Part shown: piece by piece, positions 47,006-56,142 of the stretch | How positions within the stretch are numbered: the first letter of the stretch is position 1 | Layout: each line of letters begins with the position of its first letter | Source: Phaeosaccion multiseriatum | Lineage: Eukaryota > Protista > Ochrophyta, other classes | Assembly: GCA_965112735.1 (NCBI GenBank) | Contig: OZ218961.1 | Span: forward strand, 868,001 to 932,000 | Direction of reading: 5' to 3' | DNA length: 64,000 nt | Notes under the pieces: generated by a model | Seen by the model: the letters and a program-made list of their open reading frames with translations, nothing else | The model's database searches: none | What the model was told of the DNA's origin: nothing | Made by a program: the position numbers and the translations under genes

Positions 47006-47128
47006 GCAAGGTATCCGACAACCCTCGCTCATTGACAGTCCCTCCAGAGCAGTCAGCACGGCAGCAGAGCAGTGCCACGCTAAGCTACAGATCTGCACCA
47101 TATATCTTCCACGACAGTTGAACGCCCT

Positions 47129-48169
47129 TCAGTCCTGGCAGTCGCACGGGTGCCCATTGGCGTGCACCCACTGCTTAATCTCCTCAAAGTCTTTGGCGTC
47201 GATATCCCACTCCTCTAGGTTAGGCTCTCCCAACACGGTGTCCCTGATGACCTGCGGGCACGACATTTCGTCCCACGCACACTGCACTTCCTCCGATCGG
47301 AGCCACTTCAGCACAGCAAGGCTCTTACTATTCAAGACTGCCTTCATACACACCTCCGCATCCCAATGGCAGAGGTGGCGAGCACTGGCGTAAAGGAATT
47401 GCAGCACCTCGAGGCGCCCCTCGTCAGCTGCGAAGTAAGCCCCCTTGCGCCAATAGCCGTCTTCATTCTGTTCCAGCAAGGCTCTCGTGGGAGGATGCTC
47501 GAGAAGCCATTCCACGACGGGGACATGCCCACCCGCGCATGCATGGGCCCAAGATACGGAACGAAAGTCAGCGTTTCCTTCTTCAGACAACAGCCACTGG
47601 AGCATCTCTAAGTGCCCTTCCTCTACCGCGCAGACACACATGGCGTAGCCGGTACCGTACCATGGGCATTGCTCCTTGTCGGGAAGGCCCTCTGAGCGCA
47701 GCCACTTTAGTACGGTCAGGCCATGCTTTCTGTTCTTCGCTGCTGCCTCACACACATCTCCACACACGTCTCCATCCCAGGGACAGTTCTTGCCATGGAG
47801 GGCTTTGCATACCTCGACATTTCCGTACTGGGCTGCGGCCTTGAAGAGCTGGACACTCAGTTCTAGGTCCTGCTGATCTGTTGTCGCCCAGTTGACGCAC
47901 TGCACAGAGCTGACCACAGATGAATAGCCTGTCTTCCCTGCTGGATACGAAGCAGCGTAGTTGGCCTTCCACTCCTTGCATACACCAGCCACAAAACAGA
48001 AGTGCCCCTTTCCCACATACGCCAACATGACGCAGAGCAGCTCGAGCTGTGCCAGGACCTCGTGGCAAGCTTCAAAGAGAAGTCCATTCCCTCCTTCATT
48101 CGAAGCGGTAGCACTGGCACCAGCACTACTCGCTGGTGGTGGTGGTGCTGCTGCTGGAGACCGTCCCAT
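47129..48169 (-). CDS. Intronless ankyrin-like repeat protein (GHLEVLQWL..CPW type) with F-box-like N-terminus
   Basis: LELLCVMLAYVGKGHFCFVAGVCKEWK followed by repeats such as CAVEEGHLEMLQWLL, AADEGRLEVLQFL and CPW/CHW/CAW. Confidence 0.82.
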   Translation of the reverse strand: MGRSPAAAPPPPASSAGASATASNEGGNGLLFEACHEVLAQLELLCVMLAYVGKGHFCFVAGVCKEWKANYAASYPAGKTGYSSVVSSVQCVNWATTDQQDLELSVQLFKAAAQYGNVEVCKALHGKNCPWDGDVCGDVCEAAAKNRKHGLTVLKWLRSEGLPDKEQCPWYGTGYAMCVCAVEEGHLEMLQWLLSEEGNADFRSVSWAHACAGGHVPVVEWLLEHPPTRALLEQNEDGYWRKGAYFAADEGRLEVLQFLYASARHLCHWDAEVCMKAVLNSKSLAVLKWLRSEEVQCAWDEMSCPQVIRDTVLGEPNLEEWDIDAKDFEEIKQWVHANGHPCDCQD

Positions 48170-48265
48170 CCTCCTCCAGCGTAGATTCACGCGATCTGTG
48201 ACTCTGGTTGAGGAGGCCGTGAAGATGGCAGCTGATGACTGGCTCGTTTCTCTGTCGATCTCTTT

Positions 48266-48445
48266 TCAGTCCACTACGTCCTGACACCTAGTACTGCCCA
48301 TGCCTTCCCCTCGAGCGCTCTCTCGCTCAGTCAGGCTAACTGCTAATACTGATAATTGTTTATATTGTGTAAGGGGGGGTAAATGCGATTTCCAGGGGGT
48401 GCCAAAGCAGGGCGGGCAGACGCGTCTGCCTCGCCCCTACTCCCA
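48266..48445 (-). repeat. Split direct repeat B2 (180 bp)
   Basis: Identical to 48850-49029. Confidence 0.95.
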
Positions 48446-48500
48446 TCCACCCCGTTGGATTCCCGATAATCCCACTCGTCCCCCCGGGCCGGGCGGGTGG

Positions 48501-48846
48501 GGAAACTTTTGCTGTCGCTGCCGTCTCCTTCGCGCGGTGGACTGCTGGGCTGCTCCGCCCCTTCGCTGTCCTTCTCACCGCGCTGAGCTCTTCGGCACTT
48601 GCTACAACTCTTTCGACGCCGTACTCGCGTCGCCTCCTCTTTTACAGTAGTGAATGCTAAATTCTTGCTCTACCCCGGTGGGCTGAGCGTCATACGTGGC
48701 CGCACGGGCCATTGGGCCCTCGCGTCGGTCGGCGCGGCGTGCCCTTGCCTCCATCCATTTTTTCTGTGACTGCCAGTCCTCCCCGTTTCCCGAAAATACG
48801 TTTTCGATACTATCGACTCGTAAACTCGCTCTGCTCGAAAACTACT
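48501..48846 (-). repeat. Split direct repeat A2 (346 bp)
   Basis: Identical to 52581-52926. Confidence 0.95.
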
Positions 48847-48849
48847 TTT

Positions 48850-49029
48850 TCAGTCCACTACGTCCTGACACCTAGTACTGCCCATGCCTTCCCCTCGAGC
48901 GCTCTCTCGCTCAGTCAGGCTAACTGCTAATACTGATAATTGTTTATATTGTGTAAGGGGGGGTAAATGCGATTTCCAGGGGGTGCCAAAGCAGGGCGGG
49001 CAGACGCGTCTGCCTCGCCCCTACTCCCA
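48850..49029 (-). repeat. Split direct repeat B1 (180 bp)
   Basis: Identical to 48266-48445. Confidence 0.95.
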
Positions 49030-49160
49030 ACTACACCCGCTTGAAATCTCATGTCTCCTTCCCCCCTTCTCCCCTAGTCTCCCCTCTGGCCCCCAACTTC
49101 TACGGCACCGATTCCCTCGCTCATGGCCAGCGTATTCGTTACCTCAGTTGACTCCGTCGA

Positions 49161-49279
49161 GTTCTGGCGGATGTAGACGATGAAGCAGTTGCTCTTCCAT
49201 GGTCCCTATCGCTGGACCTGGACGTCCGAGAAGTCCTTCGCCGCGATGGTCCTTGCCGCGCCGATCTGAAGAGGTGCCG
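49161..49279 (-). pseudogene. Tyrosine recombinase C-terminal remnant
   Basis: Reads H-L-F-(R, 1-nt loss)-IGAARTIAAKDFSDVQVQR*GPWKSNCFIVYIRQN, matching the HSxRIGAAT..GRWxS..Y box II of DIRS-order recombinases. Confidence 0.78.
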
Positions 49280-50719
49280 TGCTGATCTGCTGCCTTGTTG
49301 CCCGACGCTACATTGTCCGCTGCTACACTGTCTACTGCTCAGCTGCGGTGATGCTACGCTGCCTACTGTCGCATTGCCAGCCGTTGCTACGCTGCCCTCT
49401 GCAGGGGTCCTGCCGCTGTCGCACTGCCAGCCTGCTGCGCTCCTTATGCAGCTGTGCTGCCTACTCCTGCCCTGCCTGCTGTTGCGCGGCCTTCTACGGC
49501 TAACCGCCTACTGCTGCGCCGCCTACTGCTGCGCCGCCCGCTGCTGCGCTGCCTGCTGTTTCACTGGCGGTTGCTGTACTGCCTGCTGTTTCGCTGCCTG
49601 TTGCAGCTCTGCCTTCTGCGGCGCTGCCTGCTGCTCCGCTGCCTGCTGCAGCTGCCTTCTGCGGCGCTGCCTGCTGCTCCGCTGCCTCCTCCTGCGCCGC
49701 CTGCGGCTGCGCGGTGTGCTGCTTCAGTGTCTTCTGCCGCACCGGCTCCTGTTGCGCTGCCACTTGCTGCTCTGCCTGACGTTGCGCTGCCTGCCGCTAC
49801 TGGGCTGTAAACTGTCGCGCTATCTGCTGCTCGCCACCTGTTGCGGCGCCGCCTTACCGCTGCACTGCCTCCGGCTGCTCACTGCCTTCAGCTGCTGCTA
49901 TGCTGCACGTTGCCTCGCTGCCTACTGTCGCGCTGGTTCCGTCTTTCTGCGGTTGCTTAGCGCCTGATGCTGCACGGTCTGCTGTTGCGCTGCCTTCCCC
50001 GGTACTGCGCGCTGCTGCGCTGCCTGCCGCTACGCTGCCTCTAGCTTCTGCTCTGCCCTGCACTCCATCTTCGGCCTGCCCGATGCTGATCTACGTTTCG
50101 CTTCGCCTGCCCGCTGTTGACTGCCTTCTGCGTAACTCTACGAGCTGCTGCCCTACCTGCAGCTGCTGCCCCGCTTCCAGCGGCTGCACTGCTTTCCGCT
50201 GCCATGAAGGGACTGCTGTGTCCAGCCGCTTCATTGCATACTGCTGCACCGCACGTTGCCTCGCAGATCGATGCTGCGCTGCTGTCTACTGCTGTACTAC
50301 GTGTCGTTTCGCAGCCGCCGCTGCCTACGTTCTGCTCTGCTTAGTGCTGCTGCGCTGCCTCCGGCCTCTGCTACCTCGCGCTGCTGCCCTGCTTCCAGCT
50401 GCTTTAGTGCGTGTTGCCTCGCCGCCCGCTGCTGCACTGCTGCTGTACTTCATACTGTGTACCTTCGCAGCCCGCTATTCCACTGTCTCGGATGCTATCC
50501 TTTAGGCGGCTGCCCTGCTTCCGGCTGCTGCACTGCCTTCCGCTGCGGAACTTCGAGCTGCTGCGACACTTCCAGCTGCTGCACTGCACGCTGCATCGCA
50601 GCCCGCTGCTACACTGCCTTCTGCTGCTGCCATGCTTCGGGCTGCTGCTGTGCAGCATACTGCTGTACCTTCGCAGCCCGCTGTTCCACTGCCGTCGGAT
50701 GACTGCCTTACTTCCAGCT

Positions 50720-52307
50720 GGTCCATTGCCTTGTGCTGCTGCACTTGGAACTGCTGCGCCACTTCCATCATCTCTCGTACTGCACGTCGCATCGCTGCCC
50801 GCTGCTGCCGCGCTGCCTCATGCTGCTGTACTTGGAGCTGCTGTGCCACTTCCATCATCTCTCGTACTGCACGTCGCATCGCAGCCCGCTGCTGCGGCGC
50901 TGCCTTCTGCTGCTGTACTTGGAGCTGCTGCGCCACTCCCATCATCTGTCGTACTGCACGTCGCATCGCAGCCCGCTGCTGCGGCGCTGCCTTCTGCTGC
51001 TGTACTTGGAGCTGCTGCGCCACTCCCATCATCTGTCGTACTGCACGTCGCATCGCTGCCCGCTGCTGCGGCGCTGCCTTCTGCTTGTGGGGGGGCAGAG
51101 GGGGAGAGGGCAGCAGCATTCGGGCGTGTCAGCCTCAGGGGCACGTGTGGACGGAGCAGGTCATCGCTCCTGCCAGCATCGCAGGACTATCCCCATAGGA
51201 CTATCCCCATAGGACCATCCCCATAGGACCATCCCCATAGGACTATCCCCATAGGACCATCCCCATAGGACCATCCCCATAGGACCATCCCCATAGGACT
51301 ATCCCCATAGGACCATCCCCATAGGACTATCCCCATAGGACCATCCCCATAGGACTATCCCCATAGGACTATCCCCATAGCACTGTCCCATAGGACCATC
51401 CCCATAGGACTATCCCCATAGGACTGTCCCCATAGGACCATCCCCATAGGACTATCCCCATAGGACCATCCCCATAGGACCATCCCCATAGGACTATCCC
51501 CATAGGACCATCCCCATAGGACCATCCCCATAGGACCATCCCCATAGGACTATCCCCATAGGACCATCCCCATAGGACTATCCCCATAGGACCATCCCCA
51601 TAGGACTATCCCCATAGGACTATCCCCATAGCACTGTCCCCATAGGACCATCCCCATAGGACTATCCCCATAGGACTGTCCCCATAGGACCATCCCCATA
51701 GGACTATCCCCATAGGACCATCCCCATAGGACCATCCCCATAGGACCATCCCCATAGGACTATCCGCGGCGCTGCCTTCTGCTGCTGTACTTGGAGCTGC
51801 TGCGCCACTCCCATCATCTGTCGTACGGCACGTCGCATCGCAGCCCGCTGCTGCGGCGCTGCCTTCTGCTGCTGTACTTGGAGCTGCTGCGCCACTCCCA
51901 TCATCTCTCGTACTGCACGTCGCATCGCAGCCCGCTGCTGCGGCGCTGCCTTCTGCTGCTGTACTTGGATTGCTGCGCCACTCCCATCATCTGTCGTACT
52001 GCACGTCGCATCGCAGCCCGCTGCTGCGGCGCTGCCTTCTGCTGCTGTACTTGGAGCTGCTGCGCCACCTCCATCATCGTCGTACTGCACGTCGCATCGC
52101 AGCCCGCTGCTGCGGCGCTGCCTTCTGCTGCTGTACTTGGAGCTGCTGCGCCACTCCCATCATCTGTCGTACTGCACGTCGCATCGCAGCCCGCTGCTGC
52201 GGCGCTGCCTTCTGCTGCTGTACTTGGAGCTGCTACGCCACTCCCATCATCTGTCGTACTGCACGTCGCATCGCAGCCCGCTGATGCGGCGCTGCCTTCT
52301 GCTGTAC
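50720..52307. repeat. 87-bp tandem array (about 4 + 6 units) interrupted by a nested insertion
   Basis: Unit GCTGCCTTCTGCTGCTGTACTTGGAGCTGCTGCGCCACTCCCATCATCTGTCGTACTGCACGTCGCATCGCAGCCCGCTGCTGCGGC. Period confirmed at 50871 versus 50958. Confidence 0.9.
51086..51765 (+). mobile_element. Nested insertion: ~98-bp unique head plus ~41 x 14-bp repeat tail, flanked by an 18-bp direct duplication
   Basis: GCGGCGCTGCCTTCTGCT at 51068-51085 and 51766-51783. Tail (GGACYATCCCCATA)n at 51184-51765. Confidence 0.62.
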
Positions 52308-52580
52308 TCTCTATCCCCCATCGTCGTCTTGGTCCGTGTGTGGGCGGTGAAAACCCCACCTAGAGTGGCAATTGCCTTCGACACTCGAGCCACCGCCCGC
52401 ATGCTCGTGACTGCTGGGCTGCCCCATGCTGCCCTTACCGTGCTGAGCACTGAAATACTTGTGACGACTCTCAACGCTGAACTTGCGGTGCCTCCTCTCC
52501 AGACCACAAAATACGGCTGATCTGAAAAGATACGCCTCGTAGAAAGTCCCGGATCCCCTTCTCGTATAGCGGCGTCCCCC

Positions 52581-52926
52581 GGAAACTTTTGCTGTCGCTG
52601 CCGTCTCCTTCGCGCGGTGGACTGCTGGGCTGCTCCGCCCCTTCGCTGTCCTTCTCACCGCGCTGAGCTCTTCGGCACTTGCTACAACTCTTTCGACGCC
52701 GTACTCGCGTCGCCTCCTCTTTTACAGTAGTGAATGCTAAATTCTTGCTCTACCCCGGTGGGCTGAGCGTCATACGTGGCCGCACGGGCCATTGGGCCCT
52801 CGCGTCGGTCGGCGCGGCGTGCCCTTGCCTCCATCCATTTTTTCTGTGACTGCCAGTCCTCCCCGTTTCCCGAAAATACGTTTTCGATACTATCGACTCG
52901 TAAACTCGCTCTGCTCGAAAACTACT
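52581..52926 (-). repeat. Split direct repeat A1 (346 bp)
   Basis: Identical to 48501-48846. Confidence 0.95.
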
Positions 52927-53303
52927 TTTCTCTTTTTCCCTTCGATCTCAGAGGAGCAAAGCAGCAGTGCCGCACCGGGGGTTGAGACGGAGAGAAAGGA
53001 AAGTGGAAGGGGCCGCTATTCCCTTTCTTGTATGTGAGTAATTGCATGCTCCCGCGGGATGGTATTGGTTGTCTCCCCTTTATCCTCCCGGTCTCAGCGT
53101 TGCTGCCTCCCTCCACGCCCGCTCATCCGACTTCTCCCTACTCCGCTTTCGTTTGCTTGCATGCATACTGTTGCTGCCCCCGCTCCGCAGAAGCTCCAGA
53201 GGATCGACTCGTTCGAGGCTTCATTTGACACCGCCTTCTGCGGAGACTAGGCGGGTAGCGGGCTTTGCAAGAGGGGGCGCGCGTATCTACGCTGCAGAGG
53301 AGG

Positions 53304-54305
53304 ATGGCAACGAGTAGCGCTGATACCAATGCTGTCGCTTCAGATGAACGAGGGAATGGACCGCTCTTTGAAGCTTGCCACGAGGTCTTGGCACAGCTCG
53401 AGCTGCGCAGCGTCGTGTTGGAGTACGTGGGAAACGGGCACTTCTGCTTCGTGGCTGCTGTGTGCAAGGAGTGGAAGGCCAGCTACGCCACTTCGTATCC
53501 AGCAGGGAAGACAGGCTATTCATCTGTGGTCAGCTCTGTGCAGTGCGTCAACTGGGCGACAGATCGGCAAGGCCTCGAGGTAAGCACTAAACTCTTCTGG
53601 GCCGCTGCCCGATACGGAGATGTCGAGGTGTGCAAGGTCCTCTATGGCAAGGACTGTCCCTGGAATAAGTATCTGAGTCTCGCAACGACGCAAAATAGAG
53701 GGCATGGCCTGAGCGTACTAAAGTGGCTGCGCTCGGAGGACCTTCCAGACAAGGAGCAGTGCCCATGGCTCGGGAACGGCTCCATCATGTGTGCCAGCGC
53801 TGCAGAGAGAGGGCGCTTGGAGATGCTCAAGTGGTTGATGTCGGACGAAGGGAATGCCGTAACTTATTCCGGAGCTTGGATCTCCGCATGCCAAGGGGGG
53901 CATGTTCCCGTCGTGGCTTGGTTCTTCGAGCATCCTCCCACCCGAGCCTTGATGGAGGAGAATAGAGACGGCGAGTGGCGCAAGGGGGCGTTGTTTGCAG
54001 CTGACTCGGGCCGCCTCGAGGTACTGCAGTTCCTCCACACCAATGCTCGTGACCTCTGTGATTGGAATCCTCACGTGTGTTTCAACGCAGTCACGCACGG
54101 CAGGAGCCTTGCTGTGCTGAAATGGCTCCGATCGGAGGAAGTGCAGTGTGAGTGGGACGAAGAGTCGTGTCCACAGCTCATCAGGGACAGAGTGTACGAT
54201 GAATGGTATGGGGAGGGTGGGATATGGAACATCGACGCCAGAACCTTTGAGGAGATTAAGCAGTGGGTGCATGCCAACGGACACCCCTGCGACTGCCGAG
54301 ACTGA
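53304..54305 (+). CDS. Intronless ankyrin-like repeat protein with F-box-like N-terminus (paralog of 47129-48169)
   Basis: High similarity along the whole length, ending KQWVHANGHPCDCRD*. Confidence 0.82.
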   Translation: MATSSADTNAVASDERGNGPLFEACHEVLAQLELRSVVLEYVGNGHFCFVAAVCKEWKASYATSYPAGKTGYSSVVSSVQCVNWATDRQGLEVSTKLFWAAARYGDVEVCKVLYGKDCPWNKYLSLATTQNRGHGLSVLKWLRSEDLPDKEQCPWLGNGSIMCASAAERGRLEMLKWLMSDEGNAVTYSGAWISACQGGHVPVVAWFFEHPPTRALMEENRDGEWRKGALFAADSGRLEVLQFLHTNARDLCDWNPHVCFNAVTHGRSLAVLKWLRSEEVQCEWDEESCPQLIRDRVYDEWYGEGGIWNIDARTFEEIKQWVHANGHPCDCRD

Positions 54306-54984: not shown

Positions 54985-56142
54985 TCAACATCCCCCCCGC
55001 TCGAACTTGTTTCCCCTCTCGTTGAGCAGGCCAAAATGCCTCTCGGTCTCCAACCCTTCCTTTCTGTTGCCGTCGGCCATCTGAAAGAGGTACATGCTCA
55101 CGCTTCTTTCTCGAGCCCACTGCAGCACGCCCCTGGTAAACGCCGCAGCATTCTCCGCTGTGGCGTGCTTTGCCCCCCTCGTCGGCCAACCTGTCTCTCC
55201 GACCACAACCTCCAAGCTGTCGTCCGCCTCCTCCCTCGTCGCTCCTCCTCCTTCTTGTCCTTCTCTCACTCTACGGACGGCCGCGACAACTGCGTCGTAC
55301 ATTCCAGACATGAGGTCGGTGTAGCGCGTGCCTTGATCATCGTAGCCCTGCCCTCCATTGCGAAAGGTGGCATACTCGACCGACACGTCGGGCCCAAGGG
55401 CAAAGTAGGGGTAGATGTTGATCAAGAAGGGGCTCCCTCGCTGCTTGGCCTTTTCCTCGTACAAAAACGCCACCACGCCCTGCATCACCTCCAGCACTGA
55501 GGAGTCGAACTCTCCCCTACTGGGCGGGTACGACATGCCCATGATTGACATGTCAAGCGGAGTGGTAACCTTCACCAGCGGGTGGCCTGCCACATCGAGA
55601 GCCTCTCGCAACCCTCTCAAATTCTTCACCAGAATAGAGACAAAGCGTCCCCTATTCTGGTGCGAAAGGACCTCGTTCCCGACGCAGATGGTTAGCTTGG
55701 GGGCCATCTCTGGCTTGGGAAGCTGTATGTGGTCCTCTACCCAGTTGGTCCAACCCTTTCCGCCCCTGATGCGAAGAACTTCATGGTTGGGCACGGCCAC
55801 CATCACCGCCGAGATGTGGTCCTGCTGGAGGTAGTGCGAGTAGGTCTTAACGTTTGTGTCAAACAACTTCACTGCCTGTACGCCTCGGTACGACAAGGAG
55901 GGAGTATCGGTCTTCGGCTGCTGCTGCTGCAGAGCACGTATCGTGGAGGACACCTCGGAAGGTCTCCAAGGTCGCGAGCTCAGTTCTCCGACGTTGACTC
56001 CGAGCAAAGCTCCGCCAGCAGCGGCGGTACAGGAGGCCGCATCTGCATTACTAGTGGGAGGAGGCAGTTGCTGCTGCTGCGGCTTTGCGACTTCTCCCTG
56101 GAGCGCCTTCCGCAACTTCCTGAACACCTTCTTCAGCACCAT
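54985..56142 (-). CDS. Glycoside hydrolase family 17 beta-1,3-glucanase, intronless CDS
   Basis: GVNVG, ICVGNEVL (acid/base Glu), PFLINIYPYF, VVVGETGWPT (nucleophile Glu), ERHFGL. Confidence 0.92.
   Translation of the reverse strand: MVLKKVFRKLRKALQGEVAKPQQQQLPPPTSNADAASCTAAAGGALLGVNVGELSSRPWRPSEVSSTIRALQQQQPKTDTPSLSYRGVQAVKLFDTNVKTYSHYLQQDHISAVMVAVPNHEVLRIRGGKGWTNWVEDHIQLPKPEMAPKLTICVGNEVLSHQNRGRFVSILVKNLRGLREALDVAGHPLVKVTTPLDMSIMGMSYPPSRGEFDSSVLEVMQGVVAFLYEEKAKQRGSPFLINIYPYFALGPDVSVEYATFRNGGQGYDDQGTRYTDLMSGMYDAVVAAVRRVREGQEGGGATREEADDSLEVVVGETGWPTRGAKHATAENAAAFTRGVLQWARERSVSMYLFQMADGNRKEGLETERHFGLLNERGNKFERGGC

Follow-up and report, generated by a model that had tools for sequence, protein, structure and literature searches.

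A gene-less 4.7-kb mobile element with split direct repeats in the alga Phaeosaccion multiseriatum, probably a non-autonomous tyrosine-recombinase retrotransposon

PAT and Ngaro retrotransposons share a canonical layout, A1-...-B1-A2-...-B2, in which A1 equals A2 and B1 equals B2 (PMC4157794, PMC8547959). In Cafeteria burkhardae, Ngaro elements have split direct repeats of the form A1-[..]-B1A2B2 and are accompanied by scattered solo AB repeats (PMC8547959), and elements of this type are abundant in a related lineage, Ectocarpus having 15 families of Ngaro and 5 of PAT-like elements (PMC12477816). TOC1 of Chlamydomonas reinhardtii is a non-autonomous tyrosine-recombinase (YR) retroelement (PMC9940879, PMC5613634), and in DIRS elements one short sequence recurs at either end and in the circle junction (PMC7192593). 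Here we describe an element from Phaeosaccion multiseriatum, found in a window of 64,000 nucleotides (contig 12, C12:868001-932000) of a eukaryotic assembly of 67 Mb in 22 contigs. It is a mobile element of 4.7 kb with split direct repeats and no genes of its own, and its family is a new one of a known kind. We interpret it, with a probability of about 0.65, as a non-autonomous YR (DIRS-order) retrotransposon with the split direct repeats of the Ngaro/PAT/TOC1 layout.

Self-comparison of 46-55 kb of the window resolved the element, on the minus strand, into A1 (52929-52581), an internal region, B1 (49029-48847), A2 (48849-48501), a 55-nt spacer and B2 (48445-48263). On the plus strand, where the B repeats are called Y and the A repeats X, the order is Y1 48263-48445, spacer 48446-48500, X1 48501-48849, Y2 48847-49029, interior 49030-52580 and X2 52581-52929; A1 (X2) would be the terminal repeat on the 5' side in the sense proposed, its internal copy A2 is X1, the internal copy of the 3' repeat, B1, is Y2, and the 3' terminal repeat B2 is Y1. 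An earlier reading of the same DNA, made from the sequence only, had proposed this layout with both repeat pairs identical, and self-comparison agreed with it, the A pair matching at 349/349 positions and the B pair at 183/183. A BLAST value of 98% over 197 nt for the Y pair reflected an alignment that extended into a half-similar tail; in all copies the matching of B1 and B2 stops at the same point. X1 and Y2 overlap by three T, the four T at the end of X1 and the four at the start of Y2 lying within a single T5 run (48846-48850) that forms the internal B1/A2 junction and reads ACTAC-TTTTT-CAGTCC on the plus strand. Conservation of the spacer extends to every copy and to the solo units, and because its edges weakly resemble both edges of the internal region, A2-spacer-B2 would appear to be an internally deleted unit. 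TOC1 is likewise gene-less, a few kb long and arranged A1-internal-B1A2-short spacer-B2; its repeats are reportedly 217 and 237 bp and its spacer 123 bp. TOC1 belongs to a green alga, and the likeness to the present family is one of layout, with no sequence relation expected.

The ends of the family are precise. At the 15 or more left ends flank was followed in every case by 3-4 T and then CAGTCC, and at right ends ACTAC was followed by 4-5 T or more and then flank, most copies ending CTAC and a few CTAG. In the window copy the outer end of B2 reads TTTT+CAGTCCAC on the plus strand and that of A1 reads ...AAAACTAC+TTTT, the latter being the same at all right ends of the family. The junction motif with its single T5 occurred at seven places in the genome, all of them inside the family's own copies. 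As the window copy has 4 + 4 T at its ends and 5 at the junction, its target would have been about three T. The same short sequence was thus present at both ends and at the internal junction with no integrase-type duplication, an arrangement of the DIRS order, and we propose that the T5 run is the crossover core, equal to the circle-junction sequence. In DIRS-1 of Dictyostelium a short sequence common to both ends and the junction is also the proposed crossover site (PMC7192593), although DIRS-1 is autonomous and has inverted terminal repeats and an internal complementary region, whereas the element described here is non-autonomous and has split direct repeats. These ends also bear on the reading of the element as a rearranged integrase-type derivative of a long terminal repeat (LTR) element, either a large retrotransposon derivative (LARD) or a terminal-repeat retrotransposon in miniature (TRIM), whose LTR would be Y-spacer-X. 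Solo units of 587 bp, described below, do resemble solo LTRs, and the homogenisation of the repeats is LTR-like; but there is no second complete LTR, the first being directly followed by another Y, the ends are not TG...CA, no sequence like a primer-binding site follows the repeat, in place of a target duplication of 4-6 bp the "duplication" consists in every case of a T run whose length varies, and the odd arrangement is constant in all copies. We therefore regard this reading as extremely improbable.

Searching the assembly with the A and B repeats, as the sequence-only reading had recommended, showed that they were dispersed, with 49 matches to X and 37 to Y across 13 contigs. Far from being confined to a single locus, which was the result that would have told against that reading, the split-repeat arrangement was found again at four other loci (on C10, twice on C2, and on C12) with unrelated flanks. 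Together with the window copy (C12:916263-920929) these make five interior-bearing loci, the others being C10:1913558-1928520, C12:1612945-1616771, C2:1718576-1723031 and C2:4663328-4668252, and there is a further interior fragment at C1:2422234. That the element is mobile and non-coding and has the TOC1/PAT/Ngaro layout is supported. The order of a short plus a long unit was common to four of the five. Outside the arrays, the window and contig-10 copies differed at 7 of 2831 bases (0.25%), their homology ending at T runs beyond which the flanks are unrelated, and the other three interior copies diverged from the window copy by 1.1%, 3.5% and 4.4%. Since the contig-10 copy is only 0.25% divergent at an unrelated site, sequence comparison indicates that the family was copied recently.

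In addition, at least 14 solo Y-spacer-X (A-spacer-B) units of 587 bp, 82-99% identical, were found on many contigs. Two interior-bearing loci depart from the usual structure. The C2:1.72 Mb locus (G000:C2:1718446-1723031; L064:1946-6531) is a head-to-tail tandem, [end of interior-X][Y-interior-X], in which 128 nt of interior end plus X are followed by Y-interior-X without the usual Y-spacer unit. The copy at C12:1612945-1616771 (L004, L025) is cut at both ends, Y1 starting only at position 123 and X2 stopping at position 152; it lies inside a 185-bp satellite, with a YR element locus about 27 kb away. The other interior-bearing copies, and the family for the most part, lie outside satellites. 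The contig-10 copy, 15 kb long, was considered as an autonomous master and rejected, since its extra length comes from a 10.4-kb Copia-type element that has inserted into it and has RVT_2 and integrase SH3 domains. That insertion (L061:3419-8296; G000:C10:1914313-1924677) has three open reading frame (ORF) segments in the same frame, of about 350, 726 and 547 aa, with single TAG and TGA stops in that frame between them, and two stretches of it, of 1927 and 393 bp, are duplicated in inverted orientation at 100% identity. At G000:C2:5116789-5116838 only the first 50 nt of Y were matched, at 98%, and this match is isolated from all other parts of the family.

Comparison of the repeats among copies gave evidence on how they are maintained. 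Two subfamilies make up the family, with 8% difference and a 10-bp indel between their A repeats, yet A1 and A2 within each copy were 99.2-100% alike. About 28 subfamily differences, together with three lineage-private changes (alignment columns 113, 309 and 347), were paired in both A copies; unpaired A changes numbered only four, and no difference between A1 and A2 was common to several copies. A private A-to-T change at position 7 stood in both B copies of the contig-10 element. The spacer was the same in both subfamilies, and hence the composite predates the subfamily split; as the composite is older than the split and the A pairs are nevertheless alike, the A copies have been homogenised since. 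Paired changes of this kind fit what would be predicted if both A copies were regenerated from one template, like LTRs, and would argue against simple DNA copying of a tandem. The pattern expected of repeats regenerated in each cycle was therefore found for A, and for B in part. It also follows from the homogenisation that the identity of the repeats is not a clock. Recent mobilisation, which the sequence-only reading had deduced from identical repeats, thus stands on the 0.25% divergence from the contig-10 copy and not on that identity.

The same changes bear on the reading of the element as Crypton-like, that is, as a circle-and-integrate element acting at the DNA level by a YR without reverse transcription, with Y...X as its basic unit; the split repeat would then consist of one deleted and one full unit in tandem, and recombination at T-run cores would move it. 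Such an element would have the T-run cores seen at both ends and at the junction, and could leave the short Y-spacer-X unit alone many times and form the head-to-tail tandem that exists; several matches in the genome look YR-only. It leaves unexplained, however, why A1 and A2 share lineage-private changes, for which repeated gene conversion would be needed; four of the five interior-bearing copies keep the same short-plus-long order, and the 20 or more insertions are not readily produced by cut-and-paste. On balance we consider a Crypton-like origin unlikely.

The element encodes none of the proteins required for movement. No Pfam domain was found at E<=0.01 in any of its ORFs of at least 80 aa, in agreement with the earlier statement that it has no ORF for reverse transcriptase (RT) or Gag. 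Because it encodes neither RT/ribonuclease H (RNase H) nor a YR, as domain or as remnant, only non-autonomous membership in a YR group is possible. The split direct repeats, with A1=A2, B1=B2 and the order A1-...-B1-A2-...-B2, recurred on the same plan in four further copies, and solo AB units accompanied them. The favoured interpretation, a non-autonomous YR retrotransposon, follows from the exact repeats, the T-run ends, the solo units, the concerted A copies and the presence in the genome of young YR elements of the same plan; the use of a YR we infer from structure alone. Stramenopile Ngaro elements, as far as the available descriptions go, share the split repeats and solo AB units with this family, but they encode Gag, RT/RNase H and YR whereas this element encodes nothing, and insertion at T runs, seen here, is not among the features given for them in those descriptions. 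We propose the following cycle. RNA running from A1 to B2 would be reverse-transcribed by enzymes supplied in trans, and the ends would be rebuilt from the internal B1/A2 junction, so that one template would serve for both A copies, a step supported by their concerted evolution. In the product B2 would be joined to A1 through the T run, and a YR would cross this product with a genomic run of 3-5 T. The expected outcome is a T run at each end without a true target duplication, which is the pattern found, and later recombination between A1 and A2 would generate the solo A-spacer-B units that were observed.

The genome itself holds YR elements that are candidate helpers. Pfam Phage_integrase exceeded the cut-off at 13 loci. 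These form two YR families (L068/L070 and L067/L075-78), whose ORFs of 385 and 390 aa share 66% identity, the copies within each family being 98-99.9% alike. The YR ORFs overlap the end of a 772- or 790-aa ORF, and behind them lie direct repeats, B1 ... B2, whose end coincides with the limit of homology between copies. In family I the A repeat is present again 5.5 kb upstream (C12:1648306-1648818 compared with 1642153-1642807), giving an element of about 6.8 kb of the form A1-[ORFs]-B1-A2-B2. Both families thus have the plan of the element described here, A1 ... YR-B1-(linker)-A2-spacer-B2, and have A-like units that also occur alone or in tandem. They differ from it in that they have other end sequences and sit in satellite arrays of 165-185 bp, whereas the present family uses T runs and is mostly outside satellites, and family I has 81 nt between B1 and A2 where B1 and A2 of this element overlap. 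A-like units of family I also follow one another in tandem at regular intervals of about 0.8 and about 2.1 kb (G000:C6:2367006-2369250; C15:1996460-2013655; C16:515691-523764); the repeated unit of these arrays is either a solo AB unit or a short non-autonomous relative. More distant YR loci are present as well, at C15:2080651-2082448, where a 344-aa YR adjoins an 893-aa ORF, and at C1:638630-641695, C10:1884534, C15:285522 and C1:3519006. A 297-aa portion of the ORF upstream of the YR had no Pfam or Protein Data Bank (PDB) sequence match, and its AlphaFold model (predicted local distance difference test score, pLDDT, 31) was unusable.

Several observations weigh against the interpretation of the element as a YR retrotransposon, and most of them concern the enzymes. 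No match to RVT_1 was found at the YR family loci; language-model look-alikes of their upstream ORF were RNase H-bearing clusters, which we treat as a lead only. The sequence-only reading had supposed a decayed recombinase within the element, and this was not upheld: when the YR and upstream ORFs of this genome were compared by tblastn with the window as a whole, every match had E>=0.15, and Pfam on all element ORFs revealed no remnant of a YR or RT. No YR, RVT_1 or related match lay closer than about 20 kb to any copy, nor was a YR or RT match near the divergent A-like sequences (71-72%) on C11, C3 and C12. We compared the element ends with the 3.2-kb 3' region of each locus of both YR families by blastn at word size 7, by Smith-Waterman alignment against shuffled sequences and by a conserved-block search, and no similarity appeared by any of these methods; the junction motif was found only in copies of the family itself. 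The YR families end in other sequences, and as they also lie in satellites their target is probably a different one. The comparisons made therefore gave no terminal repeat or junction shared with a coding YR element, that is, no partnership of the TOC1-to-TOC3 type; TOC1 has a recognised coding relative, the helper family TOC3, whereas none was found for this family in its near-complete assembly. The active autonomous partner that had been predicted is accordingly plausible, since the genome has YR elements that are young, keep their ORFs intact and have this layout, but none of those compared shares the ends or the junction of the family. The family may instead have been moved by YRs with unrelated ends, through recognition of the split-repeat geometry or the T-run core, or by a divergent YR element specific for T runs, a suggestion that we put forward tentatively and at low probability.

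Two further points on the same side come from individual copies. In the C2:4.66 Mb copy B1 and B2 differed at about 10 sites, and B homogenisation is thus partial. For target duplication beyond the T run, the true pairs of left and right flanks of 10 insertions were compared with mismatched pairs. There was no regular duplication, only 1 of the 10 being clearly above control: the solo unit L015 (G000:C13:598228-598818), which has an imperfect 17-19-nt direct duplication flanking its T runs. The flank repeat of the window copy was marginal, an 8-mer 12 nt away that 4% of controls equalled, and the other insertions tested had no flank duplication. Such occasional flank similarity, strong in L015 and marginal in the window copy, would suit target-primed reverse transcription of a Penelope-like or LINE-dependent kind (LINE, long interspersed nuclear element), with partial tandems mimicking the split repeats. 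Partial tandems are typical of Penelope-like elements, the targets are T-rich, and the C2:1.72 Mb copy resembles [5'-truncated unit][full unit]; yet the upstream unit is one fixed internal-deletion form in all copies and solo units and not a variable 5' truncation, flank duplication is absent from most insertions, and the element had no Rfam match at E<=1, including none to the hammerhead ribozyme. This explanation we judge to be very improbable.

The internal region (49030-52580, minus strand), present at five full loci and one fragment genome-wide, is non-coding and, as the sequence-only reading had noted, filled with tandem repeats. Arrays with units of 15, 87 and 14 bp, located by Tandem Repeats Finder (TRF), occupy about 1.8 of its 3.55 kb (about 52%). 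A degenerate CTG-rich array of 23.5 units of 15 bp (68% matches) lies at 49447-49798, and an 87-bp array is divided into a first block of 4.1 units at 50727-51085 (95% matches) and a second of 6.2 units at 51766-52304 (96% matches), its unit number varying among copies. Nested within the 87-bp array is a patch of 680 bp (51086-51765, plus strand) consisting of 97 unique nt and then (AGGACYATCCCCAT) x 41.7, the 14-bp unit at 51183-51765, and flanked by an 18-nt duplication (51068-51085 = 51766-51783). The patch was common only to the window and contig-10 copies, with a shorter array of 332 bp in the latter, and was absent from the three older copies. Its only other match in the genome was at C7:18105-18211; as this is 18 kb from a contig end, the source of the patch may be subtelomeric. 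Just inside A1, a degenerate partial A repeat at 52409-52498 (minus strand; about A positions 40-140, local alignment score 56) matches the interior of A copies elsewhere at 74-78%.

Internal tandem repeats and head-to-tail tandems are known in Helitron-like elements, and the structure could accordingly be read as a non-autonomous rolling-circle element of the Helitron/Helentron kind, a tandem heterodimer inserted between T's. The 5' end allows a reading as TC, CTAG terminates a few copies, insertion in T runs occurs without duplication, and the genome has one Helitron_like_N locus. That Rep locus is, however, the only one in 67 Mb and is on a contig without any copy; most copies end CTAC and not CTRR, the base preceding the 5' end is T and not A, there is neither a hairpin within 30 nt of the 3' end nor an inverted copy of the 5' end near it, and the model gives no reason for the homogenisation of A1 and A2. 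We find a rolling-circle origin quite improbable.

In its genomic setting the window copy occupies the shared upstream region of two head-to-head paralogous genes for ankyrin-repeat proteins, at 47129-48190 (minus strand) and 53265-54305 (plus strand). An outer 1-kb inverted repeat (47126-48135 against 54309-53308, 80%) was considered as the termini of the element and rejected, as its arms are these ankyrin-repeat paralogues. A glycosyl hydrolase family 17 gene at 54985-56142 (minus strand) adjoins the right-hand paralogue.

Non-autonomous YR retrotransposons are rarely documented, TOC1 being the textbook case, and the present family adds a clean algal example. Its ends are precise and its proposed crossover site is a homopolymer; solo units and a tandem form exist, and private mutations are paired. 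Taken together, these features are evidence from nature that each cycle rebuilds the two A copies from a single template. The findings are also relevant to annotation, as the element lies between two ankyrin-repeat genes arranged head to head and has relatives dispersed over chromosome arms. If the family is indeed mobilised by YRs with unrelated ends, or by a divergent YR specific for T runs, it would provide a natural system for the study of substrate recognition of the DIRS type.

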